Assembly: GCA_965112735.1 (NCBI GenBank)
Contig: OZ218952.1
Coordinates: 496,001-560,000, forward strand
Length of the DNA: 64,000 nucleotides
Direction: 5' to 3'
Origin: Phaeosaccion multiseriatum
Taxonomy: Eukaryota; Protista; Ochrophyta, other classes
This document shows positions 2,474-46,926 of this stretch, piece by piece (position 1 is the stretch's first letter; each line of letters opens with the position of its first letter). Under the pieces are notes generated by a model. That model had not been told where the DNA came from and did no database searches. It saw only the letters and a program-made list of their open reading frames with translations. A program made the position numbers and the translations under genes.

Positions 2474-6270
<3,797 letters not shown>

Positions 6271-6689: not shown

Positions 6690-6870
6690 GATAGGTAGGT
6701 AGGTAGGTAGGTAGGTAGGTAGGTAGGTAGGTAGGTAGATAGGTAGGTAGGTAGGGAGGTAGGGAGGGAGGTAGGTAGGGAGGTAGGAAGGTAGGAAGGT
6801 AGGTAGGTAGGTAGGAAGGTAGGTAGGTAGGTAGGTAGGTAGGTGGGTAGGTAGGTAGGTAGGTAGGTAG
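6690..6870 (+). repeat. (TAGG)n tetranucleotide microsatellite
   Basis: Imperfect aggt/tagg run. Confidence 0.9.
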
Positions 6871-6957
6871 GGGGCGTCGCAAAGTTAATTTATTTAGGAT
6901 AGGTTTTGGGGACGGAGAAAACAGCAGCAGCTGATCCCTAAAGATTCGACCCCTGAC

Positions 6958-7105
6958 GTGCTATTATGCTATCTGCTATCGCCGGCGCCAGCCGGCGTGC
7001 TATCTGCTATTGCCGGCGCCAGCCGGCGTGCTATGTGCTATCGCCGGCGCCAGCCGGCGTGCTATGTGCTATCGCCGGCGCCAGCCGGCGTTTTGTGCTA
7101 TTCGC
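6958..7105 (+). repeat. Left subterminal repeats of the transposon (TGCTAT-rich unit TGCTATCGCCGGCGCCAGCCGGCG, ~4 copies)
   Basis: Tandem ~31-bp units overlapping and following the left TIR. Confidence 0.85.
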
Positions 7106-7355
7106 CCCCCCGGGGTCGGGGGTGGGAGGGTGCGCGTGCGGGGGGCTAGGAGCGGAGGAAGCAACTCACACGTGTTTCATTGCCATTAATTCGCGTCAGT
7201 TCTTGTATAGTATGCCTAAGGGAGTATATCAAGGTCCACCCTCTGCCTGGCCTGGCTGACCTGCTGCCCGTGCACCCCTACCTCTCCGCCCTGTGATTGA
7301 CTGGCTCTCCGCTAGCTCAGCCGGCGGACGGCCCGATCGACATTGTGCTCGCCAA

Positions 7356-10300
7356 TCAGTCACTTTTACCACTAGGGCAGGCAGCATTCACTCCGTCACA
7401 ATACCAGTCCCCTTCAGGAAGCGTAGAGAGGGGAGGGGTCAGGCAGTACGTGTGAAACTCCTCATCGCAGCCGTCACATAGCAACATTTTGTCGTGGTCA
7501 ACATCTTTCTGACAGACTAGACATGCAGTGGCTTCGCTGGAGCTAGAGTCTGCTGCTTTTGCCGTGCCACGAGACAAAGCCCCATAACTCTCGGGCTTGT
7601 TTACCGTGCGCCCACGTGAGGACATCGCCCCCACCACCTTTCCGATGATGTTCTTGCGCAGTGTTCTCAGGTTCAGCGCCTCCTGCTCGCCATCACTGCT
7701 ATCGTCCTCAGACATGTCCTCTCCCATGTGCACGCTTGGGTCGGGGGGGCGTATCCCATCGCCTTGGCCACCTCTTGGCCCTCCGCCTCTCTGTTGACAA
7801 TCTGCTTGCACTCCTCGTGCTGCTCCTCCGTGATGGCAAACCTCCGAAGCCTTCTCTGCGCGCACACCCCTCCTGAAGCTGCATGTGAGCCTTCGATGTA
7901 CATTGCTTCGTGGTAGCGGGGCAATGCGCCATAAATGGCAGCACAAGACACAGAAGCCTCTTTCCCGCCGTCGACTTCGTAGACGACTGCTGCAGCCCCA
8001 TCCCCGTCCTGGGACTCGTCGGTAGAGTCCTGTTCAGCGACGTGAAAGTATGAAACACCAGGCTTTGCCGGAACCACCTTCTGCTTGGAGCCTCGTCCCT
8101 TCTTCGAGACGATCACCTCCTTCCGAAGATCGACGCGAAGCTGTGCAAGAAAAAAGCTCTCCTCCGACCCCTTGTCTGCCCTGACTATCACAACGTCATT
8201 TGCCCTGTAGAGAATGCGAGTTCGGACGGATTCACCGGTCTTCCGTCCTTTCTGTCCGCGCTTCCTCGCTCCCGAGCTCTCATGCAAGCGCGACAGGTAT
8301 CCACTCGGGTCGTTGCTTTGCGCAGAGTTGGGAGCAAACGCCACCGAACGCGGGGCCGCTCCAACATTGTACTTCCTCTTGTTGGTTACACGCTGCTGCG
8401 GAACCTTCCTAAGACGAGCCGCCGCATTGCGAAGCGTCTGCGTGTCCTTCTTGCGCTGCTTCCGTTGCCCTTCGTCAAGCTTCTCCGCTACCCTTGGTCG
8501 CTTCAACACGGGTGAAGCCACCAATCTGCTCTCGTTTTGCTCCAGCTGGTATCCCGCCCTGAGCTTTCGACCGCTGCTGTTGACGCTGCTTGTGCAGTAG
8601 GCAAAACCCATGCTGGGGTTGGCCTTCTTCGCAGCCTCAAGCATCACAAGGCCCCTTCTTCGGGCATACTCAAGAGCGTCTGGAACATCCTGGCGGCCTT
8701 CCCTTTGCTTCGTGAAGAAAGTCTCAACATTGAGGGTCAAAACGCTCCTCATCTGCATCTTCTCCACGATGCCGCGAGGCACTCCCTGCTGACGGAAATG
8801 AGCGAGGAAGCATCAAGCAAGGAGCGAACAGCGAAGCCGTGAGACGAAAGGGCAAGGCTGATTTCCAAACGCACGCGCCCACGGACACGGACATTTTTAC
8901 TCACGCACTCACGCACACACACGCACACAGCCATGGGGAGCACCCCCCTTCTCACCTCTGCAAGCATCCGATGTAGCATCCGAGGTAGTGCCTGCAGGCT
9001 CGCCTTGATAGCACCTCGAACTTCGCGTGATGGCATTCCTTCAGGGCCCTGGAGAGAGACCAGGGATTTGCCTGTGGCAGCTGATATCGCTTTCCCCATG
9101 TGACTGAGAGCCAAGTCGACCACATGAAGCTTGGCAATGCTCTCCTCCATCGTGCGTGCGTTGTTTTGCATGTCTTTGCCATTCTCATCCAAGTCTTCGC
9201 CCTGGAGCTGATACGCCTCACTCAACATCCGTTGTAGTGGGATGAGGTGCTGGGCGTAGACGTAGCAGTCCGAGATCATTCGAATGCACTGGTTTCCAGT
9301 GTCGGACAAGAAGAAAACGTTGTACACGAAGCAGCCGAACGTAGGTCTGAACAAAGGTACTTTCGATGCCGTACCGCTGGCAGTGCTCTCTCCGGGTTCT
9401 GTGTTTCCCTGTCCGCCCATCAGCACGGATGATCCCTTCCAGCTTAGCACCCCACTGTCACGACGAAGGAGAACCTTGACAAGCGCATGCAAACCTTCAT
9501 CTAGCATGAGGATGACGATCATATCTTCATCATCGTATGCACCGGGTGGGGCCAACGTGAGTCCACAAGGCTGAGTCCCCACGTGAGACTTCACGCACGT
9601 GAGGTGTGCGCGCCTTGGCTTCTCAACAGTACCATCTTCCTCGTCATCAGTCAGAGCCATGAGTGTATCTCCGTCATTGCCACTGCCACCCTCTGGTCCT
9701 CCGGCACGTTCCACATTGCCCTCCCAGACAAAAAGCGAGCTGTCGGCGATGCAGGCAACGCAGTCATGCGAGAGTGCTGTGAGGCCCGCAGGTCCCTTGG
9801 GTAGGTCACACAGCTTCTCGCTCACAGGTGCAAAAGGGTTGCCAGCGTCAAATGAGAGCCGGTGTAGTGCTCCCCCCGCCAGGTTCCTCTTGGGTGACAA
9901 AGAGGTCGAACGCGCGCTCAGAGGACACGGCAAGCGCAATGGCAACGGGGCAACGGATGCCCTCCTCTTCTCTCTCCTCGAGGACATTCTCCTCAGAAGT
10001 GCAACGCTCCTGGATCCGACGGACCAAGGGCACTGCCTTCAAATTCAAATGCCGTTGCTGAGTCTGTCTCCCCCGACCACGCGCTGCTACATGCCCGTCC
10101 GGTTGCTGGTCGTCGTCATCATCATCGTCGCCCTCCTCCGCCGCCGCGCGGGGTCCCCTGTTTCCTGGAAGAGCGGCCAGCACATGCACCACCCAAATCT
10201 GATTCGCTCCACTGTCACACATGTACACGTAGTCGCCAACCACGACGAGAGACCCAAGACTCTGGAAGCAGTCGTCTCGCAGAACAACCTCTGTGGTACA

Positions 10301-12108
10301 AGGCACATGATGGGCCTTGAGCATGCGCAGATGCCTGCCTGAACGATCGGCGTTGAAGATCATGCCAGAGCCATGATGGTAGCCCATACCAGTCGGCTTC
10401 TGAGTCTGCGAGGCCATGTTCTGATGCCAGAAACCCCACGGCTCCGGGCACACGGTCACCCCCACGAGAGCACGGCGCTTCTCCCGCTCCTCCTCTGAGA
10501 GTAGAGCCAACTGCAGAGACGCCGTCGTAACAGCGATTGCGCTCTCCACTGAGAAAGGATCCTTGTTTTCAATGGCGTCAAGGCCAACATTGGCTTGTAC
10601 TGCTTCACTTCGAGCCGGGTCCAGATCGTGGAATCTGGCGCGAAGAGTTCGCAGTCCGACTAGCCAGCCCTGGCAGACGACCCACCAATTGAATGTCGTA
10701 GCACGAACACACTTTACAAGGTGAGCCCCGTCAGGCAGTGCCTCATACCACCCCAGGGGGTCGTCCTCTCCGAGGGTTCTTGCCGCCATTTTCCGAATGA
10801 AGGCAAGCTGTGCGCCATTACAGTCTGTTGAGATGCACAATGGTCGGAGACTCTTGCACACGAGCCCTTTCCTCTTGCACCTCGAGCAGACTCTGCTGGA
10901 GAACTGAGTCGCGCAAACGCACTCACTTTCACCGCAAGGACCCTCCCCTCCGGTGGGACAAGCTTGGTGGCAATCACACGCCTCGCCCATCTCCACCCAC
11001 GAGGGGTTCTCCCCCGTCAGAATCCGCTGCCAGAAAAGCTCGAGACAAGGGATGCAAACACGCAGCGCCTTCATGATTTCGGTCACGCTCGCGGCAACAC
11101 TTTTGTAGTCACCCCCTGCGGTGTGAAGCTGAAAACCGATGGAGCCCGTGTATGCCCCTTTCAGATCCATCATCATAACTTCCATCATCTCGGAACCCAG
11201 CTTAGGTGCGTCCTCGTCTCGCAGCTGGAACAGAACGAGTAGCGATAAGGGAGGGTTGACAGGAGGCGAAGCAAAGGCGGGGCTGCAGCGTGAGCGAGCG
11301 AGCGAGGAGGCGTGATTAAGATTGACGATGGATCAACAGTGATTCTGCCCCGAAAGATCAGTGGGAAGGAGGGGACGCCACGCACCTGAGCATCAGACTT
11401 TTCCAGTATTGCCTTCGCCTGCTCCAGTGTTGTATTTCCAAACTGATGTGCATTGCCCCAATTGGTTTGGCTGGTTGTATCAGTATGATGGCCCTTGGCA
11501 ATGACGAAGCCATCCATTTTGACAGTCACGGGAACCACAATCTTCTCGTTGCCTTTGTCGCCAAGAGTGTAGGCTTGGTCGGCACAGAAGCGGGCGAAGA
11601 CATTGACGACGTTGATAATGTCTTCGACTTGCAGACCGTACCTCTTGATTAGGCCAGGCCTGCGCCTAATGAGTGCTCTCGGATGAAAGCCGCCTGTGTT
11701 CGCCCTGCGGAAGTAGTCCTTCATGGCCTGGTCCCTGGAGACGTTGGGGCCACGAACCTTCTTTCTGCGGGGTGCCCCATAGGAGAGCATGGAGCATGCT
11801 GAACCAAATACGTTCTGCTGGGTCTCATTAAACTGTCGCAGCGTCTCGTAGCCATTGAGCTGCTTGCTCGCGGCCACAGTCTGACGCCTGGACCAAAGGC
11901 CGCTGTTCATGACCCAACGATGCACCGTTTGATACATGAAGTGACTCCGAGTAAAGTGCCCTCGATCAAGATGGAATTGGATCGCAAAGGGAACAATGTC
12001 GACATCGTTTACGTCCCGGGTAAGCTCTACACGCCCGCTGTCCGCGTCTTCCGTCACAGCCACCCGCCCATGGTCTTCTTCTGTCGCGGACGAGCCCGCG
12101 GCGCCCAT
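7356..12108 (-). CDS. P-element-like DDE transposase with Cys-rich insert, NHL-like beta-propeller, BAH-like region and C-terminal PHD finger; introns 11385-11225 and ~8957-8787; two apparent homopolymer frameshifts (~9875, ~7746)
   Basis: Motifs in P/THAP9 order: VKMDGFVIAKG (D1), LGSEMMEVMMMDL, ISTDCNGAQ (D2), LPDGAHLVKCVR (DxxH), LNVETFFTKQR (E). PHD: CLVC..LLCDGCDEEFHTYCLTPPL..PEGDWYC. Start codon inferred. Confidence 0.75.
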
Positions 12109-12204
12109 CGCCTTTGTTTGTGGCCAAATGTGAAACGGCAGAATCTTTATTGGCTTACAGCTGGCTGGGCCCATGGCTGGGCCCCACTGGTTCAAAAGTC
12201 CTTC

Positions 12205-15011
12205 ATGTCTGGCCGCGATGGAGGGAGGAGTTGGGGGGGGGGGGGCGACTACTACAACAGCAGGAGAGGCACGCCAAGTCCAGTTGGCAGCAGGAGTCGG
12301 AGCCGGGAGAAGGCCCCTGAGAGGGCGAGGAGAGGGAGGAGTGCCAGCAGGAGTTGGAGCAGGGAGAAGCACAGTGAGAGGAGGAAGCGAGGGAGAAATG
12401 CCAGCAGGAGTCAGAGTAGGGGGAAGGACACCGAGAGGAGGAGGGCAGGGAGAAGTACCAGCAGGAGTCGGAGCCGACCCAGATCCGGAGGAGGAGGAGG
12501 GAGGAGGGAAGGAGAAAAGGGTCGAAGCAAAGGGAGACGGGGCCGCAGTCCCAGCGAAAGAGGATTCCCAGCAGGCGCGAGGAAAATGCGTCGGAACCAA
12601 AGTCCCAGCGACAGGGGAGTACGCCGAAGCAGCCATTCACAACACGCTTCTCACGAGCTGGGGTGGGAGGAGGGGGGGCGGCTTGAGGACACCTATCTCC
12701 AGAGTACGGCAACCTTGGCATCGTCTTCTGAGGCACAAGACTTCGATTATGCCTTGCCCCTGAGTGCAGGGATGGGACAGGCAAAACCTACCCCTCTCAT
12801 GTTCGCGCATGTGGGGACATTTCCAAGAGGATGCCTCAACCCCGTCGAGGCTGATTTCAGTCTCGGCACATCGGTGTCCTGCAACACGACCGAGCTCTTC
12901 GAGACCTTGCCCTACACGTTCCAGCTGGCTAATGAAGACAAGCGATTCTCCAGCTTCAAGGCCTTCCGTGGACATTTGACCAGCGAATTGCTCTTTCAGA
13001 CGGAACAAAAGAAGAACGACATCACGATCAGAGCCTCCACGGCATTCAGACGTGGCAGAGGGTTGGATACAATCCGCGACGACGTCTCCCTGCGCCGCGT
13101 GGTACGTGTCGGGTACAACTGCCTCTCGATGTTTGTGCATTGTCTGCTACGGCAGCAACCCTTTCTTAAACCCGCCCCCCCCCGCCCCTCTCTGTCTCTT
13201 TCTCCAACACACACCCAATACAGGTGCGCTCGTTCTACACTTTCCCTCCGGGCCGTATCGATCCCGACAAACGGTGGAGACTGGATCTGTACTGCGAGCT
13301 ACGCCCGAAATCAGGGGCGAGACAGCAGGAGAACGTGCAAATTTGCCTGTCTTTCCCTACCCAATCTCTGGACAGCGCCACAGATTTTTCGACCCATACC
13401 CCACCCAAGAAGGCAGGTCATCGAGGTGGTGCTGCCCGTGTCAGTGAGACCACCAGTGATAGTGAGGGAGAGAGTGCCGGCGGGACGAAAGGCGGGAAGG
13501 CGGGGCAAGAGGGGGCACTGACGAAGAAGGCGAAGAGCTGGCTCCACGCGCAAGGAACCAAGTTCTTTTATCTTTTGCGGGAAATGCCTGATGTGGAGAT
13601 GCAAACTCTCAGCGGAAGCAAGGTCGGTGATGCAGCAAGCTTCGTGAAGATCCATACGCCAGCTTTGATTCAGCTTGAGGCCAAAGCGAACTTCTCCATC
13701 AGACACGCCAGAACATCATTGGATATGCTGGTATCTGTTGTGTGCACCAGGCCTGCTTGTCAGAGCGCCGGGAAGGGCAAGTACAAGCCTCAGTGGACTC
13801 ATTTGTCTGGCGTTAAGCGCCACAGAGACTCCCACTCATCGAGCGGTCAGAAAAGCATGCAAGCTGCACTCTCTCACTTCCTACTGAAGACGGCGTTGGG
13901 GAAGCAGGAGGAGGAGGAGCAGGAGGAGGAGGAGGAGGAGGAGGATGATGGTGGTGGTGATGATGATGATGAGGAGGAGGAGGAGGAGGAGGAGGAGGAG
14001 GAGCAGGAGGGGGGGGAGGAGGAGGAGCAGGAGGAGGAGGAGGAGGAGGAGCAGGAGGGGGGCAGCAGCCCTTCTTCCCACCAGAAGAAAAGCAGGGCCA
14101 TGCCTGCGGCACAATCAGTGGCCGAAGCTGAGCAGCTGACAGGGGACATGAAGGCGAGGCTGCTTGTCCTCGGCGCTGAGCAGGACATGCACAAGGAAAA
14201 GGGGGAGTACACCTCCTTCTTTTTGGACGCGATGATGACCACTGTATCCGTGAACGGAAACAGGGCACTACTCCCGTGCGCGTCTCTTGGTCACATTTTC
14301 AACCCAGCTGTGGAGAACTCCCCCATGCCCAACGTGTTGGCGACGGCTCCGAAAGGGTTCCTGCCGAAAGGTTACAGGGAGTCTGGTCTTACAATGACGA
14401 AGTGTGAGCTCCTCGTCCTCCCTGCGAGTTTCAGCGGCCATTTCTCGACTGTCGCTGTCCTTCTACCTACCTCTGCAGCTAGTGACGACGGGGAGGGTGC
14501 TATGGCGTACATTCTGCACTTTGATACGGTCCGAAATGGGCGCCTCGGTCACCACCCTTCGAAGCGAGTGCTCCAAGCGACGCAGGTGTATGTGGAGAAG
14601 GTCATGGAGGACGAAAGAGCCCCTGGGACGGCAGCCCTCCGATTCCGGCAGGTCTTTGTTGGTGTGCCACAGCAGAAGGCCGGCTCGAATTCTTGCGGTC
14701 CGGCAACAGCTCTATTCATGTCGAAATTGGCTGTGGCAGACACCAGCCCCGTGCGCAAAGTGCTCTATGGTGTTGAGCAAGACAACAGCTGGGAAAGGGA
14801 CGACGGTGTAGCGATTTTGTCTAGTGCGGCGGGGGCAAAGAAGGAGACCGTGGACCGCTTCTTGGCCGCGTGTGGGCTGCCGTGTCTGACCTGCGAAGAG
14901 TATGAGGCAGAGAGAACTCGCCTCTTTCGGGCGTACCTGAGCTCCGGGATGCGCAACGGTTCCTTGCCCGACGTTTACAACTCGGCCTTGCATAAGTGCG
15001 TCCTGGGTTAG
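12205..15011 (+). CDS. Transposon accessory gene: RS-rich N-terminus, CxxxxC..HxxxH zinc-finger-like motif, acidic tract, C-terminal Ulp1/SENP (C48)-like cysteine protease; intron ~13102-13223
   Basis: Catalytic order H (LPASFSGHFS), D (YILHFDT), Q..C (VPQQKAGSNSCG) typical of Ulp1 peptidases; a GTACGT..CAG intron joins the 11920 and 13224 ORFs in frame. Confidence 0.8.
12288..12476 (+). repeat. Three-plus copies of a 57-bp coding tandem repeat (19-aa RS-rich unit)
   Basis: Units begin CAGCAGGAGT at 12288, 12345, 12402 and 12459. Confidence 0.8.
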
Positions 15012-15182
15012 TGAAGGAGAGATGGCTGCCTCGCGAGAGAGGGAGATGGGGGGAGAGGGGAACGCCAAGGTTCGCCCAGTCACCATTGTATTGGTAATAT
15101 AAGACTGAAGGCTCGCATACTCTCTGCGCTCGACGTATGCTGATTAGGCAGGCAGCTAGGAGTGGAAAGGCTGTCGCAGGGC

Positions 15183-15310
15183 GTCTGCTATCGCCGGCGC
15201 GACGGGGCGTGCTATCTGCTATTCGCCGGCGCCAGCCGGCGTGCTATCTGCTATTCGCCGAGTGCAAATAGCATGCTATTGGGCGCCGGGGCGCCCAATA
15301 GCATGCTATC
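15183..15310. repeat. Right subterminal TGCTAT repeats and hairpin (ATAGCATGCTATTGGGCGCC-GG-GGCGCCCAATAGCATGCTAT)
   Basis: Same unit as the left end, in direct orientation, followed by a ~20-bp-stem palindrome at ~15268-15309. Confidence 0.8.
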
Positions 15311-15519
15311 GCAGATAGCATAATAGCACGTCAGGGGTCGATAAAGATGGGAGAGCGGTGGGGAGAGTTGAGTACTTCGTCGCCCATCAATGGAAGGCAT
15401 TGCAGGGGAGCGAATGTAACAAGTCGAGCAGCTGTAGCCCTATTGGAGGGGAGGGAGGGGAGACAGTGCGAGGGGGGGTCTTCTCCCTTCCTTCTCCAAG
15501 GGTATCTAATATTTTTTAA

Positions 15520-20907: not shown

Positions 20908-23900
20908 CTGCCAATTACGGCGCCAGCCCGTCGCTGAACCCTATGCGTGCCCCCCCCACTCCCCCACTCCCCCCCCAGCAGCCGCCGCAACAGCAGCAAC
21001 AGCAGCAGCAACAGCAGCCTTTCAACCAGCAGGGACTCTCCAAGTCTTATGGTCGGGGTGGAGGGAGCTATGATGGTGTGGGACAGGGATCTGGAAGAGG
21101 TGGAGCAGGTCCCAACACGTATCACCGCGTGCCTTCGGCAGGGTCTCTGTTGCCCACATCACAGCACACGGGCACCGCTCCACAGGGGGGTGGGGGGGGG
21201 GGAGCTTCCTCCATGCACAGAGGGGGGGGGGGAGGAGGTGGTGGCTATGGGAGACAGGACTGGGAGCGAACGGGGCTGAGGCGACAAGGCCCGGTGACTG
21301 CTTTCAGGGGAGACTTTGACGGGCAGCACCACTTCTCGGGAGGAGGAGGAGGGGGAGGGTATGAGGCTGAAAGAGGAGATGGGGGACGAGGAGGAGGAGG
21401 AGGGAGGGGAGGAAGTGGACCTCCAATGGGCGAAGGCACTATGGGAAGGGGGCGCGGTGTCGGACGGGAGGGGGGATACCCGAAGGCGGGCCAGCAGCAG
21501 CAACGGATGGGGTACGATGCAGCACAAGGTGGATCCGGTGGTGGTGCGATGGGTGGGGGAGGGGAAGGAGGGCCAGGAGCAGGACAAGGAGGGTCGGGCG
21601 CTCATCTCCAAGCTCACTACCGCCAGCAGCTGCAACAGCATCAGCAGTATCAGCAACAGCAGCAGCAGCGACAACCGTCTCATCAGCAGCAGCCTCAACA
21701 GGGGGGTGGCTACATGAGGGGAGGAGGCAGTGGTGGGCCTGCCCTCGGGGGAGGGGGTGGCGGTGGAGGTCCTCACTCTATGCGTGATCAGCAGCAGCAG
21801 TATGACCAACCGCATCAGCCAGCTTCTTCTGCAACCGGCGGCCGAAGCGGTGGTGGTGGTGGTGGTGGTGGTGGTGGTGGTGGTGGTGGTGACGGGGCAG
21901 GAGGAGCGGGAGCAGGAGGTGCCCCCTTGGGCGAAAGGAAGCTCGACCCCACCAGCCTCAAGAGGGCGGAGCTTGTGGAGAGCCCGACCACTCGCATGGC
22001 CTTCAAAGACTTTTATCGCAGCTTTCGCCAAAAGGAGAAGGCGTCCTTCGAAGCCGCTAAGCGCTACGCGATGGAGTGCTTTGATAGTCTTCCGGTGAAG
22101 GTCCACTGGAAGCTCTATCTCGAAATCGCGGACCTCGCCAAACGGGAGAATCGCTTTGCCGAGGCGAGGAAGCTGTATCGGACGGTGAGTGAAGAAGAGA
22201 AGAGCCAAAAAAAAGTGTCGGGGGGCGGGATGGTACAGAAGGCAGGAAGGAGCGCGCCACACGTTTGCGCAAACGTTGATGTGGAGATATAGAATGAGTG
22301 AGCCTCACAACACCTTGCCTTCCTGCCGTGCCCGATAGATGCACACTCTCTAATACACTACTGTGGACTGCCTCTGCTACATGTGCCCATCACAACACAA
22401 CACAACACAACAGGTGACACGCTTGCAGCCCTTCGCCAGCCAGGGGTGGCTCGAGTTCAGCAAGCTGGAGGAGGAGTGTGGAGACCTGCCCAAATGTGCT
22501 CAGATCCTGCGGAGGGGAATCATGTTTTGCGAGTATAGTGAGTCGCTGCTCATCAAGGCAATCAAGCACGAAGAGCGCATGAACAATCTTATGGGGGCGC
22601 GAGAGCTGCTGGCCAGGCTCAAGCATGTGGGCATTGAGAAGGTCTGGAGAACGGTCCTGGAAGGGGCGCTGCTGGAGGCTCGGGCGGGCAACGTGACTGT
22701 CGCGCGGAAGGTTTTCAAGTACCTTATGACGCACGTGCCGTGGTATGGGCCGATTTACTACGAGGCTTTCCGACTAGAGGAGAAGGCGGAGCACTTTCAG
22801 AGCGCCCTGGTCATTGTGGAGAGGGGGCTGAGGGAGATTCCCCGGTACGGGCCCCTGTGGTTCGGGGCCTTTCGTCTGTGTGAGAAGGTGGACTTGGCTG
22901 ATGCCACGCACTCACTCCAGAGCGGCGCTAGTCCTGCCCTGGTTCACACACTGAGCGCGTTGCAGAGGGCCGAGGACAGCATCAGCAAGGAGCTCGTGTG
23001 GAAGGTGCATTTTGAGGCGGCGCAAATCGAGGAGCGCTTGGCCAGCATGGTGGCTGCTGAGAAGGTGGCGGGGGGAGCTGCTACTGCTGCACCACCAACT
23101 CCTGCTGCTGCTGCTGGAGAGTTACCCTCCGAGGCTGCAGTGGAGGGGTCGACGACGGAACGAGCTTCGGATACAGCAGTTGGTGATGATACACCTGCAG
23201 CGGCAGCGGCGGTGGAGGAGCACGTCATGGACATTACAGAGGCGCGGGATGCACAGCTCGGGAGGTGTCGCGCCTGCTACGTGCGAGCGGTGCTGGCTTG
23301 CCCGCACAATTTGCGCTGGAAGGTGTGGCTCGCAGGCGCGCGTACGGAGCTTGCGGCGGGTAAGTGCGCACGCGCCCGCAAGCTGCTCAAGCGAGCGTTC
23401 CAAGAAGTGCCTGAGAAGAGCAAGAGCCACGTCTTTCTCGAGTGCAGCCGCTTGGAGGAGTGCGTTGGAAACCTGGGGGCCGCAAGGACCATCTTGGAGC
23501 GTGCCCGGCAGGAGACGCGGACAGAGTGGAAGGTGTTCTTGGAGAGCGTCCTGCTGGAGATTCGAGCCAACGACTGGGAGAGAGCGAGGAGCGAGGCTCG
23601 TGGTGCCTTGAGCATTCACAGCGGGGCTGGGCGGCTTTGGGCCGTGCTGGTACAGCTCAAGCAGAGGGAGGACAACGCAGCGCAGCAAGCGGCGCTGAGA
23701 GAGGCACTGAAGGAAGTTCCTAAGAGTGGTGAAGTGTGGTGCGAGGGTGCCCGGATTCACCTCAACCCCCTGGGGTGCGGGTTCGATTTGGAGACTGCGA
23801 GAAAGTATCTCGACTTTGCCATCCAGTTTACGCCCCAGTATGGCGACAGTTTCATGGAGTGTCTGCGGCTGGAGCTGCTGGTGGCCACGTTGCTGCCTGT

Positions 23901-25410
23901 GGCCAAGGAGATTGTGCAGATTCTCAAGCGGAGAGAGGGAGGAGGGGCGGAGGCGGCAGGGGGGGGAGGAGGAGGAGGAAGAGGAGGAGGAGGAGACGGT
24001 GAGCAACAAGGGGGAAACGTCAGCACGGGCACAAGCACTGGCAACGCAGCAGAACAGAGCTCCTCTCTGCCTCTGGCGCTGCCGCTGATTGTGCCTTGTC
24101 ATGTGCTCGAGAGAGCAGATAGACTCCGTCAGAAGCGACGGCGTGCGCGCAGGTCCAAGAAAAAGGGCGCAGCTTCCAAGAAAGCACCAGCAGGCCGCGA
24201 AGACGTGGGAGAGGAGAAGAAGGAAGGAGGGGGAGGGGGGGACCAGGGGGAAGGGGGGGGGGAGGAGCAAGAGGAAGAGGGGGGTAGGAGAGATGGTGGA
24301 GGGGCGGGTGGTGCCAGAGGAAGTGGTGGTGCTTTTCTGTCGGCTCCTTGCTCCCCCACCTCATCAATCTACTCCCACTCCTCTGTGGCGGTGTCTGAAG
24401 TGGTCTCTGAAGTTGTATCCGAGGTGGTGATCGACAACGTGACCGACAACACCAACAGTGGCAGTGGCAGCACTAGTGGGCGCACCAGCCTCCCCAACAA
24501 CAACACAGATGCCGACGACTTTCGAAGGGTGACTTCGTGCGTCTTGGCGGAGCTGCCCCGTATTCAGGAGCAAGACCTCCTTGATGTGGATGTCGAGGGG
24601 CTGCAGTTGCGATGTGTCAACGCCGACCCCAATTACGGCTCCATGTGGTTCCACTGCCGCGCTCGCCCCTCGGACACAGCCAAGTCTGTCTTGACGGCTG
24701 CCAAAAGGGTCATGGCGAGGGAGCTGTGTGCGTTTCAAGACGTGTACCTTCAGGCCATGGTGAGAAGGATCAAGATTGAGGAGGAGGTGCAGGCGTATTT
24801 GCAGGCGGAGTACGACAAAACAGCAGCAGCAGCAGCAGCAGCAGCTGGTGATACAGCATCAGTTGGTGATGGCGGTGACGGTGGTGGCAGCGACGGTGAG
24901 GAACGCCGGCGAAGGGCGGAGAGGAGGGCGGAGGCGCGGCGGGACAGTCTGCTCGCTGTCGCTGCTCGCGCTGCACCAGCCTTGGAGGGGCGAAGGCCGA
25001 GTGGAAGCAGTGAGGCGGATGCCGCCGCTGCTGCTGCCGCTGCTGCCGCTGCCGCTGCTGGCGGTCTTTCTGTCGACGCCAAAGCCGCGGAAGAAGGCGA
25101 AGGGAGCACTATTAAAGAGGGAGGCAATGCGGGTGATGGTGATGATGATGGTGATGGTGTGCCGCAGGAGGCGGAGGACAAGGAGGAGGAAGGGAAGGAA
25201 GAAGAAGAACAAGAAGAACGTGAACAAGAACAAGAACGAGGAGGAGGAGGAGGAGGAGGAGGAGGAGGAGGAGACATTTTCGACGAGGTGTGCAAAGAGG
25301 ATTTTATGACCGGTCTGGCCAAGCTCAATCGCGTTACCTCGTGCATGAGAGATTTGTGCGCGGAGGAGCGGAGGAAGCTGCTTTTCGGGAGCGACCAAAT
25401 CGTTCCGTAA
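18046..25410 (+). CDS. Large protein with Q/G-rich disordered N-terminus and HAT/TPR-like helical repeats; intron 22185-22413; apparent frameshift at G14 run 18451-18464
   Basis: Repeated W-L-E..K-L-E / WKV.LE..LLE.R helical units (QGWLEFSKLEE, WKVWLAGARTE, WKVFLESVLLE, PKSGEVWCEGAR); the downstream frame stays open back to the G-run. Confidence 0.8.
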
Positions 25411-35935: not shown

Positions 35936-38900
35936 ATGTCGAGGGACAACAATGGCAGAGGAGGTGGACGGGATCGAGACAGCAGGGACGGAAGAGACAG
36001 CAGGGATCGGGATCGAAGCAGAGACCGTGACCGGGATCGTGACCGCAGCCGTCATCGTTCCCCGGGAAGAGACAGCGGCGGCAGAGACAGAGACGGGGGA
36101 GGGAAAGGCAGGTCATGGAGAGACAGCGACAAGAGCTCGTCCTATTCCTCGTCCTCCTCCTCCATGTACAAGGGACGCCCCTCCTCTACTGCAGACCGAT
36201 CGGGTGGGGGCGGGGGACACGGCAAGCGGAGCAGGGAGGAGAGGGACCGAGAGAGGGAAAGGGACAGGGACAGAGACGGAGACAGCTATGGCAGCAGTGG
36301 AAGCGCGAGGGGAGGCGGGCGGGGGGGCTCCCGAGAGAGAAGTCCTGCACGCTCGTCCAGAGACGAGAGCAAGAAGGCGAAGAACAGTAGCCACCACTAC
36401 CAGAGGAGAAGTAGCAGCAGCAGCCGCAGGGCCAGTAACGAGGACCAGGATAGAGGGCGGGAGCACAAGCGACATCGCACACAGGAGGACGGGCGCCGGA
36501 GGTCTTCTTCCCACTCGCGCTCTTCCTCGAGAGCTTCTCCCGCCTCCGGGCCCAAAGTGTCGAAGGTCTCGGCGTCTTCCCCACTCAAGCCCGCGGCTTC
36601 CTCAGGCGCAGGAGAGAAAGACAAGCAGCGCGGCGAGCGACCCGCTTCTTCTGCTGCTTCCTCCTCCACCTCCTCCTCCTCCCCAGCCTCTACCTCCGGA
36701 TCCAGGGTCCAAGACGGGGCGAGTGCGGGCGCCTCGGCGCAGTCAGTGTCGCCTTCATCCAAACCGGCATCAACGGATTCGGCGACAGTAGGCAAGGCTG
36801 CCACTCCAATACAAAGGCCAAGTGCAGCAGCAGCAGCAGCAGCAGGAGGAGGAGGAGGAGGAGGAGGAGGAGGAGGAGGAGGAGCAGCAGGAGCAGGAGG
36901 AGCAGCAGCAGCAGCAGCAGCAGCTGTGGCGCGGTCAAGCTCGTCTTCAAGGCCTTCACCAGGGAAAGGTGCCTCGGGAACTGCAGCCACGGAAGCTTCA
37001 CCTGCTGAGTCGCATCAGAGCAAGACCGAAGCTTCCAAGAGCAGCGGCAGCAGTGGGGGTGGTGGTGGTGGTGGTGGTAGCCACAAGGAGGATAAAGCTG
37101 ACAAAGCCAGTCGGAAAGGGGGGGATAAGATGGATAACAAGGGGAAGGACAAGCACCAATCAGCTGACAAGGAGCAGGACAGAGCCAAGTCCAAGGGCAG
37201 CAAAGACAGTGGCGGTGGTAGTGTCAATAACAGCAGCAGCAGCAGCGGCAGCAGCAATAGTGGAGGTGGCGGTGGTGGTGGTGGCGTACCAAACAACAAC
37301 AAGAGCAACAGCAACAAAAACAAGAACAACAACAACCTCAACAACAACCTCAACAACAACAACACCACCATCACCACCAACAACAACAACACCAACACTG
37401 TTGGCGACGACGCGGAGGACGTCCTGCCCCAATTTGAAGCCATGGATATGATTCCCCGCGGAGAGAATACGCTGGAGTGTGACTACTGCCAGAGGGACAT
37501 CTCCTCTGCCTGCCGCATCCGCTGTGCTGTGTGCAAAGAGTTTGATTTGTGTGTGGAGTGCTTCTCCGCGGGAGTCGAAATCAAGGTGAGCACGACCGAG
37601 CGACCGAGCGACCGAGCGAGTGAGGGGCAAGAGGAGAGGGAGGGCAACGGGGAGGAGAGGGGCGGGGGGCATGCGGGCGTAGGAGGGCAGGCAGGCAGTG
37701 CCGGGCAGAGCACGTTGTCGCCTGTTTGTTGGCGGCTTACTGGAGGATTTTCTCCGCGCCCTTCTCGCTTTCTGATCTCTCTCCCGTCTCACCCTCTCCT
37801 CCCTCGTTCCCCTCCCTCCCCCCCCCTCCCCTCCCCTCCCTCCCTCCCTCTCCTCCCTCCCCCCCCCCTCCCTCTCTCTCTCTCTTCACATGCACAGGGG
37901 CACAAGAACTACCATCCTTACCGCGTGGCCGACACTCTCAGTTTCCCCATCTTCACCGAAGACTGGAGCGCCGGAGACGAGCTGCTCCTCATTGAGAGCA
38001 TTGGCAAATACGGCCTGGGCAACTGGGAAGACATTGCTGCCCACTGCAACTTCTCCAAATCGAAGAGCCCCAAGCAGCTCAGAGATCACTTCTTTGAGGT
38101 GTATTATAGTAGGCACGGTTCCGTGCTGCCTCGGGAAACCATCGATGTCACACCCCGTGGGGAGGTGAGAGGCAGAGAGGGCGTGTGTGTGCGTGTGTGG
38201 TTGTGTGTGTGTGCGTGTCTGCATGTGTGTGCGTGTGTGCATGTGCGTGCGTGCGTGTGTGCGTGTGTGGTATCTGTGTGTGAGGAGAGAGCCCTGCTGC
38301 CCCCTGCCCCACCCTCCCCTTCCCTCCTCGTGCCCCCTCCCAACCCGCGGGGTTGTAGCCTACCCTGTGACTGAGCAATCAAACAACCAACACACCAACC
38401 AACCTCCTATACCCACTCAACTCACTACAGGTGGAGCGTCACCCCGTGCCCCCTCAGGGGGTGGGCAAAGCCGCCCCTGGAGGGGAAGACGGAGACAAAG
38501 CCGCCCCCATACTCTCCTCCGAGTGGGCAGTCAAGAGTATGCCGGAACTCAGGGCAGCGGCAGTGGGCCCGGATGGGACTGCGGTGAAGGTGAGGAAGGG
38601 AAGGGAGAGGGGAAAGGGAAAGAGGGGATAAGACGGTAAAGGGTTGTCACCGTCACTAGTGTCACACGCACGCATGCACGCACACACGCACACACGCACG
38701 CACTCATCAAGCCGTGTTAGCTCCCCTGGGACTCTCGTTGCTCTCGCTCACGCCGCTCTCCGCCTACTTCGCTTCGCTTTGCGCTGCTTGCCTCTCACCT
38801 TTGCTTTGCTTGCCTAACCTCGCCTTTCCTGGGCTTGTTGACCTCAGCACGGAGAGGGATCGTTCAGCGACCCCGGAGCCGCCGCCCCGCCAGGTAAGCC

Positions 38901-42303: not shown

Positions 42304-45300
42304 ATGGGAGGGGACCTGGGGGGGGGACCAGTGTTCTCCCCTTATTCTAAAGTAGTACAGCACTTCAAGAGGCGAGCAGTGGGTACAAGTGGCAACCAGG
42401 GCATGCCTGTCAGTCGAGGAGGAGGAGGAGGCGGAGGAGGAGGAGGAGGAGGCGGAGGAGGAGGAGAGTGTGATAATCGTGGAAATGGATACATGGGGGG
42501 GCGGCTGGCTAAGGGCAGAGGAGGTGGCAGAGGGACTGGAACAGCAGCAGTGGCGGGGGCAGGGGCGGGGACGAGCGGACGGCGCTCCCCAAAGTGGCAG
42601 CAGCACCTGAAGGGACTTAGAGCGAGACATTTCTCCCGACGGAGGATCCTAAGGACGCTGACGATACTATTTGGTGCGTTGGTACTGGGCATTGTAATCG
42701 TTCGCTCTGTGGGGCGCTATTTCAGAGGGTACAAGGTGGCCTGGAAGGGCGGACAGTGCAGCAAGAGAAGCAGGGAGGCCAAACGCTTCCCATGGAGCGC
42801 AAGCGACCTCGATGAGATTGAACGAGTGGCACGCTCATTGTCTGCGGAGACGGCTGAGGAAGCGGGTCGACACGGAGACGGCGGCGGACCAATAATGACT
42901 CTGCGGGACGTGGACCACAAGGTACCCGGCGCGATTAGTCATATATGCGCATGCCGAGCGGAAACCTGGTACGGAGCGGCCACTTCGATTGCCGAGGTCT
43001 TGGCCTTGCGAAAGAAGGAGGCGGGGGCGATGCTTGCTCAGTACAGGGAGGGGAGCTACTTCGTGGCGGCGAATCTCCACGACAACGCTGCCGTTTTCCC
43101 CAGCTGGCAGAGGGAGTTGGTGAAGCTCGTTGCCATGCTGGAGAACGTCGACGGTGGCAATGTGTTTGTGTCTATTTATGAGAGTGGCAGCACAGACGAT
43201 ACCAAGCGTCTCTTGCGCCTCCTGGAGAAGGAGCTGACCGCAATGGGTGTACCGCACTCTGTCCAAACCACCGATGTGGTGAGGGGGGAGGGGGAGGACC
43301 GCATCCCCTTCTTGGCTTCGATGCGGAACCGCGTGCTACAGCCGCTGTACCAGAGCAGCAGCACCTTTGACCAGGTGCTCTTTCTGAACGATGTGTACTT
43401 TTGTGCGGAGGATATGCTCTCACTCGTCCACCAAACCAGAGGCGACGAGGAAGAGCCAAGAGGAGGAGGAGGAGGAGGAGGAGGGTGGGGTGGTAAGGGG
43501 AAGGGTAGCAGCGCAACGGCAAGAACCAGGGAGGGTAGGGGCGGGGGGGCGGACATGGCGTGCTCCACAGACTGGATTGGCAAGAAGCCGGGTTGCAAGA
43601 ACTGTGCAGACTTTCGCCTGTACGACATTTGGGTAGGGATGGACGTGGATGGGTACAAGTTTATGAACGAGCCACCGTACATTCACCACCGGACAGGGAG
43701 GAAGCGTTTGAAGGAGGGTCACCCTTTCCAAGTGTTTTCGTGCTGGAACGGCATGGTGAGCATCGACGCCGACATATTCCAACAGGACTTGCTGCGAATA
43801 CGAGCCGGCCGGGAGGGTCTCGAGTGTGCGGCGTCCGAGTGCGAGCTGCTGGCAAGAGACCTGTGGGAGATTGGGAGGGGCAGGGTGGTGGTGGTACCGT
43901 CGGCGGTGGTGGCGTACGACTTTAGCGTCTTTGTGGACAAGCCGCGGCACGAGGTGCAGCTGGGACGAAAGGCACCGATTCGTGGGTACCAAGACGTGTA
44001 CCCCAAGAGGCTGGTCTGCTGTCCCTTGCCCAAGGGACAGGACTCGTTTGACACATGCTTCGATGACACGGTGTGGAGGGCAGTGTATTCCATCGATGGT
44101 GTCCCTCGGGCGGCGTCCAGGGGGGACATGGAGGCCACCACAACCACACGGAAGGAGGAGAGGGACGACGCCAACAACGGTAGGGACGAGCGGTCGAGAG
44201 ACTTGACCTTCCACGATATGGCAGCGGGCATGAAGAGGGAAGGGGGTGATGAGTTCACGTGTAGTAGAGCGCAAATGGCGGCAACGAGACAAAGGCTGAG
44301 TGAGTACGCCATCCCGCCCCTCGTCATGCAGAGCGGGCGTTCGAACCTCGTCGCGGATTACTCTTTTGAGGTACTGCGGGGGCCCATCGCGTGGATGAGT
44401 CTGCACCCTTGCTATGACTTTGTGTTTTTGGACGACGCGACGATACATGCCTTTGTGCAGGAGCACTACCCACAGTTCTTGCCCTTGTTGGAGTCGTCGT
44501 CAACACCACCTCTGGGCAAGGAGCGAGAGGGAGAGGGGCAGGGGGAGAAGGAGAAGGAGAAGAAGGAGACGCGGTTGTCAGATGCAGCAGGAAAAGTGAG
44601 GAACGGAGGAGAGCTGGCGGACTTTGCTCGCTACCTCTTTATGTTCCACATGGGAGGGGTGTACGCCGACATTGACACGTTGCCAGTGCGACCCATCTCG
44701 GGCATGCTGGACCCCATGGATACGTTTGTGGTGGGGCTGGAGAGCGACTTTACCTCCGACGACAAGGCGAGAGAGTGGGCCTATGCACGGGCGCGCTCAC
44801 TCTCCCTCCACGCCTTTGCCGTGGCGCCGAAGAACGATATCATGTGGAAGGTGGTGACGAAGGTGGCGGGCAACCTCGCGGACCCGCGGGGGGTGTATGA
44901 GGAGGTGCATCGGAGGGCGAGGGGCTCTGCACATCACTTGGAGACGATTTTTAAGACAGGGCCCGGCGTGTTTACGGACGTTGTGCTCGGCGCGGCCGGC
45001 GCCGGGGTGGTGGTCGAGGCTGGCGATAGTGGCAGTGTTGGTGGTGCTGGTGCTGATGAGAAGAACGAGGACAAGAAGGATGTCGTCCGGCTGTTGGGCA
45101 TCCCCGCATTTTCGTCCGGACATGTGCGTGGTAAGGACTTTTACTCCCTGCAGCGGCCCTCCTCACTGTCCAACTGCCCCACCTTTGTGCAGCACTTCAA
45201 CCTCGGCACTTGGCTGCGGTCTTGCAGGGGCAACACCATGCGGGCAGTGGCGTATGATTACATGCCGAGCGACACGTACTTGCAGACGGGGCAGTGGATG

Positions 45301-46357
45301 GCAGTGCATGTCAAGGCGTTGGCGTGGAGGGAGGAGCCGCTGTACGTGTACCCGCCGCTGTCGCGTGGGGCAGCCGGGGAGGGTGCCGTAGACACAGAGG
45401 AGGGGGAGGAAGAAGGAGGACCCTCCTCTGCTCTCATGTTCCTGCAGCTGTCTGCAGAGGGCTTTCTCGTCGCATGGCAAGGCTTGGGTCCCTTGGACCC
45501 CAACGCGAAAGAGATGTGGCGATTACCAGATCGGAATACGCGACCAATAGGAAGAGAAGGAGGTGGAGGAGAAGGTGAAGCAACAGCAGCAGCAGCAGCA
45601 GCAGGAGCAGCAGCAGCCGTCGGTGATAAGGCAGCATTTGCAGCGCTTCACGCCGCCAAGGAGGCAGAGGCGGAGGGGACGGGAGGGAAGGTTGTGCACT
45701 TCCTCCACCTGGAGGAGGGCGGAAACCTCTCTCTGCGCTTCTTTGTGGAGGGTGACTACTGGGATCAGGCCGCCTGCAAGAGGAGTATGGAGGAGAGCGT
45801 GGCGCTGTGGGATGCGAGTTGGTTGTCCGGTGGCCCCGGTGGTGATGGTAGTGGTAGTGGTGGTGGTCGTCAGGGCGGCGACAAGAAGGAGGGGAAGGGA
45901 AAGAACAAGAAGAAGGGCTCCGGTGGGGGAGGTGGTGGTGATGGAGGGGGCTACTTTGCCGTCCTGCGACCCGACGGCCGCCTGGCCACTTATGCAGGGA
46001 GGCGGCCCCTCGATCTTGCGTGGGAGCGCTATTTCCCAGCGGAGCAGGGGTTCTGCCAACACCCACACGACGAGGAGCAGCAGGAGCAGCAGCAGCAGCA
46101 GCAGCAGCCTTCGCAGTTGGTGATACAGCGGTGGCAGGGACAGGGTATGCGGCCGGGAGACTGGCTCGGCTCTGGGGAGGTTGCCGTGTTGCCATCACGC
46201 TTTGACAGCGGGAAGGTTGGCGACGGCTTGGCCCTCGTGCAGCACCACCACGGCGCCCTGTGCGCACACCACAGCAGCTACAGTAGCACCCTCCTCTCGT
46301 CCCTCTCCCTCAAGGAAGACGCAGCGTGGGGTAGGGGGGAACCTGCCGGCGCGACCG

Positions 46358-46396
<39 letters not shown>

Positions 46397-46926
46397 TGGT
46401 GGTACAGCAGCAGCTTGGGGACCTCAGCGCGGCTGTGTCTCAGGGCACGTCCCGGCCGTTTTGGTGTGCCACACGGGACGACCACACCGAGGCGAGCGGC
46501 AAGAAGAAACGGGCAGACGTGTATGTAACCGCCCTGCAGGAGGACGGAAACCTCTGCACCTACCTCAGTCGAGTTGGGGTAGACACCCAAGCAGCTCCAG
46601 TAGACGACGTACTAGACGGGGACCCAACAGCAGCAGCAGCTTCTGTACGGAGCCGTGGCGGGGGCAAGCATGAGCGAGAGAAGCATCATCATCATCGTCA
46701 CCACCTTCCTGCCCCTCCTCAGGAGGAAGTTCTGTGGTGTGCCTTCCCCGCCTCCTCGGCACTTCCACCGGGGCTGGCGGGGGTGTCTGTGGTGGTGCTG
46801 GCCTGGACACCGGGGCTCTTGACGTCAAGGCCGGCCCTGCAGTGGCTGGATGAAAGGGGGGGCGTCATTGCGGACTATGCCCTCAGTCGGGCCTTCTTTG
46901 GAGGGACTTATTACGCCAGCACCTGA
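42304..46926 (+). CDS. Intronless 1540-aa type II membrane glycosyltransferase fusion: CAP59/GT69-like mannosyltransferase + GT32 (OCH1-like DxD) + bulb-lectin-like C-terminus
   Basis: GT69: AANLHDN, VFVSIYESGS.D, FLA..RNRVL.PL, LFLNDV, YD.W, VFSCWNG, SEC.L. GT32: ADFARY..GGVYADID, TGPGVFT. Lectin-like: LEEGGNL, LRPDGRL, LQEDGNLCTY. Confidence 0.82.

Follow-up and report, generated by a model that had tools for sequence, protein, structure and literature searches.

The genome of the ochrophyte Phaeosaccion multiseriatum contains an 8,396-bp transposable element, found once in the 64,000-nucleotide stretch analysed here (contig OZ218952.1, positions 496,001 to 560,000 of the forward strand; hereafter the window), where it occupies positions 6946-15341. 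The element is likely a cut-and-paste transposon (class II, with terminal inverted repeats, or TIRs), and the DDE core of its transposase, which has an RNase H fold, is likely a homologue of the core found in the P-element/THAP9 family. This homology would be distant, and each line of support for it, taken singly, is weak to moderate. To this core are joined a beta-propeller and a PHD finger, and beside the transposase gene stands a second, divergent gene for a probable cysteine peptidase.

The ends of the element comprise three nested components: a short duplication of the target site, the TIRs, and subterminal arrays.

6939-6945: left copy of the target-site duplication (TSD), TAAAGAT, adjoining the left end
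6946-6982, plus strand: left TIR, perfect over 31 nt and 95% identical over 37 nt, beginning TCGACCCCTGAC
6967-7106, plus strand: left subterminal array, a 31-bp tandem unit repeated 4.6 times, each unit with two TGCTAT hexamers and a GC-rich near-palindrome
15184-15279 (with a palindrome to 15309), plus strand: right subterminal array, a 32-bp unit repeated 2.4 to 3 times, each unit with two TGCTAT hexamers
15305-15341, minus strand: right TIR, the inverted partner of the left TIR
15342-15348: right copy of the TSD, TAAAGAT, adjoining the right end

The perfect portion of the TIRs pairs 6946-6976 with 15311-15341 without a mismatch, a match for which the chance expectation is none. The element begins TCGAC and ends GTCGA. 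Because the next outward bases differ (c on one side, g on the other), the TSD is exactly 7 bp long; an exact 7-nt match at fixed positions has a chance probability of about 6e-5. With a single copy as the basis, a true duplication of 6 bp extended by one chance base is conceivable. Together, the perfect TIRs and the intact TSD indicate recent insertion. All of these features (repeats, duplication, and recency) had been proposed in a preliminary description of this stretch made from its letters alone, and each of them stands.

The subterminal arrays account for most of the TGCTAT hexamers: counting both orientations (TGCTAT/ATAGCA), 21 of the 32 in the whole window fall within the terminal ~200 bp of the element, which bears out the hexamer repeats described earlier. 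These arrays are probably binding sites for the transposase. They are oriented alike at both ends, and the inversion is confined to the outer 31-37 bp. Just inward of the right TIR, positions 15268-15309 hold a perfect 20-nt palindrome with a 2-nt spacer, made up of ATAGCA/TGCTAT hexamers; this structure has no counterpart at the left end. Neither a second copy nor a stray element end was found in the 64-kb window.

The transposase gene lies on the minus strand, and contains the following elements.

7356-12108, minus strand: transposase gene, with exons 12108-11386, 11224-8956, and 8788-7356 (including the stop) and GT-AG introns 11385-11225 and 8955-8789
11512-11514, minus strand: first catalytic Asp, D230 (KMDGF), invariant in the family
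10856-11056, minus strand: nine-Cys cluster between the first and second Asp, nearly invariant
10823-10825, minus strand: second catalytic Asp, D406 (STDCNG), aligned by the family profile to D303 of P transposase
10712-10732, minus strand: D437-x-x-H440-x-x-K443 (PDGAHLVK), aligned to SDTPHLIK of P transposase
9160-10363 (approximate), minus strand: NHL-type beta-propeller, between the D(2)H motif and the Glu
8723-8725, minus strand: candidate catalytic Glu, E1050 (VETFF..R....P), invariant in the family, past a long variable stretch
7395-7523, minus strand: C-terminal PHD finger (PF00628, E 1.3e-12; 48 bits, cutoff 24)

The gene was assembled from a chain of open reading frames (ORFs) that runs from 12636 down to 7359. 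Its introns are 161 nt (11385-11225; CAG/GTGCGT ... TTCCAG/) and 167 nt (8955-8789; GAG/GTGAGA ... CGTCAG/) long, and its product would be about 1,470 residues if two frame breaks, described below, are read through. The first plausible start codon is at 12108, leaving 96 bp before the ATG of the second gene at 12205 on the plus strand; an alternative ATG at 12174 would leave 30 bp between the genes. The layout given in the preliminary description, two divergent intron-containing genes with start codons 96 bp apart, is thereby upheld. The first 176 codons of the ORF at 11185-12636 (minus strand), which are Pro-rich, were rejected as coding sequence: they are the antisense of a 57-bp repeat, rich in Arg and Ser codons, in the second gene.

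A HMMER search with the 494-residue exon-2 ORF against 1.84 billion representative sequences retrieved 89 proteins at E<=1e-3, five of them at E<=1e-30; the best relative (E 5e-64) is 44% identical. Every relative whose record was checked is an unnamed protein from a metagenome or an unannotated assembly. When 28 members and the window protein are aligned (X at the two frame breaks; numbering from 12201), D230, D406, D437xxH440xxK443, and E1050, along with nine cysteines between positions 329 and 395, are invariant or nearly so. The D437xxH440 motif, 31 residues past D406, is invariant in 28-29 of the 29 sequences. E1050 is the candidate catalytic Glu on the strength of its invariance and its motif, not of a structure; its sequence block resembles the Glu block of the P family. 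The P-like catalytic motifs first noticed in the window protein are thus family-invariant, and the D(2)H motif aligns to that of P transposase.

The insertion position, which comes after the D(2)H motif and before the Glu, holds a helical segment and the NHL propeller. A profile of this insert (family alignment, window rows included) matched NHL propellers strongly: Pizza6 (E 4e-33), SOQ1 (1.5e-22), NHLRC2 (6e-21), and TRIM71 (1e-11). Pfam NHL matches occur in the relatives; on the window ORFs the PHD finger is the sole Pfam match, with none to a BAH-like domain. The likeness of the nine-Cys cluster to Zn2Cys6 fingers is weak (E 0.29). Propeller, Cys cluster, and PHD finger substantiate the extra domains mentioned in the preliminary description, and the lack of a recognisable THAP domain holds too: Pfam found none in the window ORFs or in 16 long relatives, and the N-terminal 200 residues contain no C2CH pattern. 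In the same 16 relatives, no Pfam family covers the transposase core.

Two members illustrate the range of the family. P0110, from the P0012 cluster, comes from a TARA Oceans deep-chlorophyll-maximum sample (0.22-3 um fraction), which places the family in marine picoplankton. The distant member P0029 (1,475 residues) has a PB1 domain at its N-terminus (E 6e-5, narrowly short of the cutoff), and is encoded on three near-identical contigs (L003-L005) from two NCBI assemblies and one ENA metagenome; TIRs were not found within its 8-kb contig.

The relationship to P transposase is suggested by four lines, two structural searches (Foldseek and VIA-align), a profile, and Pfam, with which the spacing of the motifs agrees. 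The core was modelled with AlphaFold2 for residues 96-597 of P0005, a relative about 30% identical to the window protein, from the family alignment including the window rows. The model has a predicted local distance difference test score (pLDDT) of 77.5 and a predicted template-modelling score (pTM) of 0.66, and its order of strands and helices is that of an RNase H fold: the first Asp ends a long strand, and the second follows directly after strand 305-315. In terms of the DDE core, D230 closes strand 1 and D406 comes after strand 4. Foldseek comparison with the PDB gave two significant matches, both to Drosophila P transposase: 6p5a_A (E 9.7e-6) and 6pe2_A (E 4.4e-5), both at probability 1.0 across 449 alignment columns. 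Behind them, by four orders of magnitude, came ISCth4 (0.13), a RAG-like structure (0.34), and Hermes (1.4). VIA-align against representative structures likewise placed 6p5a_A first (Z 7.5 over 263 residues, model 1-431 with chain 145-428), ahead of retroviral integrase cores (Z 6.5 over 79 residues). The model thereby supplies the RNase H fold that the preliminary P-like assignment had implied.

At the sequence level, a profile of the second-Asp region (A5) had P transposase as its sole PDB match within E 10 (E 0.15), in an alignment that sets D406 on D303 and PDxxHxxK on SDTPHLIK. The Pfam model for P and THAP9, PF21787 (TNP-like_RNaseH_N), was matched over the first-Asp region by four of 26 members, with a best E of 5.3e-5; all of these matches fall under the gathering score (for P0043, 22.2 bits with a cutoff of 24.6). 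Finally, the spacing from the second Asp to the D(2)H motif is 31 residues here and 34 in the Galileo transposase (PMC4168063). Taken together, these lines make distant P/THAP9 homology the best reading. Two further searches were uninformative: the Glu-region profile (A1) matched nothing in the PDB or Pfam, and single-sequence phmmer searches with three pieces of the protein against PDB sequences yielded nothing useful.

The second gene diverges from the transposase gene.

12205-15011, plus strand: gene 2, 894 residues, with exons 12205-13101 and 13224-15011 and its stop at 15009-15011
14394-14726, plus strand: Ulp1/C48-like core with H705, D733, Q782, and C790, all four conserved in the relative L001

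Its single intron, 13102-13223, has canonical borders (GTG/GTACGT ... ATACAG/). The product begins with an Arg/Ser-rich region, continues through an acidic stretch, and ends in the Ulp1-like domain, in which H705, D733, Q782, and C790 have the order and spacing of clan CE peptidases. Pfam PF02902 (Peptidase_C48) touches this catalytic part at E 0.019 (15.3 bits, cutoff 20.7). Apart from the relative considered next, two word-index searches found no homologue of the Ulp domain, and a profile search found no PDB match. The gene 2 product is probably a Ulp1-like cysteine peptidase: of the protease gene claimed in the preliminary description, the gene stands, and the protease is weakly supported. 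One speculation is that it strips SUMO off the transposase or a chromatin factor.

Other parts of gene 2 are repetitive. A 57-bp tandem repeat (12288-12474, 3.3 copies) encodes the Arg/Ser-rich N-terminus, and its antisense is the long spurious Pro-rich ORF over the transposase start. An (AGG)n-type run (13906-14058) encodes the stretch of about 70 Glu and Asp residues in the middle of the protein. Ahead of that stretch, at residues ~470-505 (about 13734-13839), lies the pattern Cys-x4-Cys ... His-x6-His-x3-His (CTRPAC...HLSGVKRHRDSH), which could form a small zinc finger, although it has no Pfam match.

An independent and complete relative of the element was found on L001, a 10,965-bp JGI metagenome contig. 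Its perfect 23-bp TIR begins TCGGCCCCGGAC and shares 11 of its first 15 bases with that of the window element; its terminus is TCGGC, where the window element has TCGAC. The TCG termini, which the preliminary description had set apart from the CA of P elements, therefore recur. L001 also encodes a split transposase with a PHD finger at the end, and carries subterminal arrays of ~31-bp units (100-280 and 10620-10790) in one orientation at both ends. Since the arrays keep the same orientation in both elements, only the outer TIR makes the two ends symmetrical. A Ulp-like ORF (1399-2130) lies upstream of the L001 transposase on the opposite strand, and resembles gene 2 in its Ulp-like part (E 3e-8). 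A large divergent ORF in L001 (2411-4549) was considered as the gene 2 counterpart and set aside, having no similarity to gene 2.

The contigs L002-L007, which hold other relatives, contain no second complete element. On L002, a Ulp-like ORF (4865-5362, minus strand) is downstream of the transposase gene and convergent with it rather than divergent; either the two-gene arrangement is not fixed, or this contig joins two copies. Exact scans of the metagenome contig collection with the window TIR and with the L001 TIR returned 0 matches each.

The transposase frame is broken twice as assembled.

9875-9880, minus strand: frame break 1, a G6 run with a +1-type shift; the intact relative P0002 reads through
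7745-7751, minus strand: frame break 2, a C7 run with a -1-type shift; the relatives P0003 and P0004 read through

Comparison by tblastn locates both breaks closely. At the first, P0002 residues 34-469 correspond to 11200-9887 and residues 476-793 to 9873-8911 in the next frame, a gap of 13 nt; at the second, P0003 residues 556-936 correspond to 8836-7760 and residues 951-1072 to 7721-7365, a gap of 38 nt. No canonical splice pair or intron is present at the first break. A 167-nt intron (7865-7699) that would skip the second was ruled out, because P0003 and P0004 are homologous inside it ('F.I..QHEE..Q.VN', 'K.(M/L)GY', then an acidic tract). The remainder of the ~4.4-kb transposase coding sequence has no stops. 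Two homopolymer frame shifts of opposite sign mean that the copy, as assembled, is not coding-intact. They are compatible both with long-read errors in homopolymer length and with real slippage mutations; in the first case two assembly errors are present, and in the second the copy would rely on intact ones elsewhere in the genome. The element was earlier called complete, a description that the two breaks qualify.

Several points weigh against a P-related, two-gene, mobile element. None of the sequence-level links to P reaches the usual significance, the Pfam matches being under the gathering score and the PDB profile matches at E 0.15-0.37. The first-Asp profile (A6) gave noise against the PDB and did not pick up P. 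The fold model was made from a 30%-identical relative, not from the window protein; its TM-scores to 6p5a are low (0.28-0.31), and a Z of 7.5 falls in the tool's 'common arrangement' range, unconvincing by itself. An AlphaFold2 model of the Glu region (E1050) reached a pLDDT of 63, and had no Foldseek match. Moreover, no structure is solved for Dada, Novosib, or Kolobok transposases, so P as the closest structure does not place the family inside P. The peptidase call consists of a four-residue motif and an E of 0.019. The L001 flanks show no TSD, which is uninformative for a metagenome-assembled repeat, and leaves the 7-bp length to the window copy alone. The two frame breaks count against the autonomy of the copy.

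The lack of PDB structures for these superfamilies gives some room to a different assignment, in which the element belongs to another described superfamily of the DxxH type (Dada, Novosib, Kolobok, hAT, or Mutator-like elements, MULEs) and its likeness to P reflects a fold that the whole group shares. We consider this improbable. Kolobok elements duplicate TTAA, unlike the TSD here. As for hAT, Hermes scored E 1.4 in Foldseek and was outside the VIA-align top 50, and the TSD is 7 bp where hAT has 8. No Pfam match to hAT, MULE, KDZ, or CACTA was obtained among the window ORFs and the relatives scanned, the one transposase model touched being that of P/THAP9. Novosib in particular is a possible home: its founding element came from a green alga, the superfamily makes 8-bp TSDs and is mostly known from Archaeplastida, and its core is poorly defined (PMC5751038). 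The literature on it, and on algal P elements, offered nothing decisive. Dada is a serious competitor in general features: TSDs of 6-7 bp, DDE with DxxH, intron-containing transposases of ~1,400 residues with a C-terminal zinc finger (Kojima and Jurka 2013, PMC3706591), and elements of 5-11 kb. It differs in its core blocks (DSTKK and YTDRDCC, compared with DGMxxKxG and DCxGxQ here, motifs matched by eye without a statistical alignment) and in the place of its finger, a CCCC finger upstream of the first Asp, whereas the Cys cluster here lies between the Asps. Dada elements also lack TIRs and target snRNA and tRNA genes (PMC3706591), whereas 31-bp TIRs bound the element here, and a search of the 64-kb window for tRNA and Rfam RNA genes found none. 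Neither a propeller nor a PHD finger is reported for Dada.

In another reading the region is not mobile: it would be a pair of host genes, one for a peptidase and one for a domesticated transposase, with an inverted repeat on either side by coincidence. PHD, NHL, and Ulp-like domains are indeed common in host chromatin proteins, and the window has one copy only. Nevertheless, this is scarcely credible: chance would not be expected to give a perfect 31-bp TIR flanked by an exact 7-bp duplication, the ends alone hold the hexamer arrays, L001 has a matching end architecture, and a broken frame speaks against a maintained host gene. A transposon that is itself a dead relic is another matter, and we give it only slightly less than an even chance. 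The frame shifts would then be real mutations, and the copy mobile only with transposase from an intact one (non-autonomous in practice). The breaks sit at G6 and C7 runs inside the 13-nt and 38-nt gaps between homology segments, and intact relatives are single ORFs across both sites. On the other hand, homopolymers are the classic place for long-read assembly errors, and both breaks are there; the TIRs and TSD are undamaged, and no stop or further lesion is present in ~4.4 kb of coding sequence.

If the transposase is P-related, it has been extensively remodelled. Shared with the P superfamily are the RNase H-fold DDE core with an insertion ahead of the catalytic Glu; the D(2)H motif ~31-34 residues past the second Asp; an (L/V)ExxF..R block at the Glu; a helical DNA-binding region before the core, which aligns structurally (6p5a 145-428); TIR ends with internal repeated binding sites; and a TSD of 7-8 bp (PMC4168063), 7 bp here. 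The differences are these: no THAP finger is present; the termini are TCGRCCCC, where P has CA; the protein ends in a PHD finger; and the element carries a second gene, which is Ulp-like. The two Asp residues are 176 residues apart, compared with 88 in Galileo, because of the nine-Cys cluster; the second Asp and the Glu are 644 residues apart, compared with 227, with an NHL propeller in the insertion position where P has its GTP-binding domain. No description of a P-type transposase with an NHL propeller was found in the literature (Repbase and Dfam were outside this scope).

Two other systems offer partial parallels. Plant KI-MULEs and some CACTA elements are TIR transposons that include a coding region for a Ulp1-like cysteine peptidase. 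They resemble this element in having the peptidase beside the transposase, but they belong to the Mutator and CACTA superfamilies, whereas the element here is P-related and its peptidase too divergent for the Pfam C48 threshold. RAG1/RAG2 and Transib present a DDE recombinase that works with a beta-propeller and a PHD finger, both of them domains of RAG2 (PMC4411706). There, however, propeller and PHD finger are on a separate protein, and here they are within the transposase chain; Transib/RAG-like structures also score far below P (E 0.34, Z 5.1). The RAG likeness is an analogy only.

The surroundings of the element are ordinary. A (TAGG)45 microsatellite (6692-6871, 90% pure) ends 75 bp ahead of the left end. 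Host ORFs encode a dual-specificity phosphatase-like protein (4174-6270), a HAT-repeat protein (PRP39/Syf1-like; 22363-25410), an ADA2-like protein with ZZ and Myb domains (35936-38374), and a fusion of a CAP59-type mannosyltransferase with a DXD glycosyltransferase region (42304-46926). For one host glycosyltransferase in the window, the closest named relatives are green algal proteins, only 30-35% identical.

These features suggest a working model, in which binding to the hexamers, the parts played by the PHD finger, propeller, and peptidase, and activity itself are all conjectural. The transposase would bind the TGCTAT arrays beside the conserved TCGRCCCC termini, pair the two ends, and excise the element; integration through a 7-bp staggered cut would leave TAAAGAT on both sides. 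Tethering of the transposase to chromatin or to a partner protein may fall to the PHD finger, perhaps together with the propeller, and the probable Ulp1-like peptidase may act in trans on a host or element protein. A more ambitious version can be offered tentatively, though we think it unlikely in full: the family would be a superfamily-level sister branch of P/THAP9, widespread in algae and marine picoplankton, which lost THAP and had its GTP-binding insertion domain replaced or extended by the NHL propeller, with a PHD finger that steers integration to particular chromatin and a SUMO-type peptidase as a required second component. If so, this would be a two-protein, chromatin-guided cut-and-paste system, uncatalogued so far.

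For annotation, the two large genes are transposon genes, not host genes of chromatin or the SUMO pathway, and an intact copy could be tried as a tool for insertional mutagenesis in algae. About 90 clusters of proteins that lack annotation, from algal genomes and from marine and freshwater metagenomes, would also acquire a name through the family. Detailed knowledge of P-type transposases comes from one insect enzyme and its human relative THAP9; a distant branch in algae would reveal the extent to which the P core tolerates rebuilding, here with different DNA-binding parts, a propeller in place of the insertion domain, and a chromatin reader.

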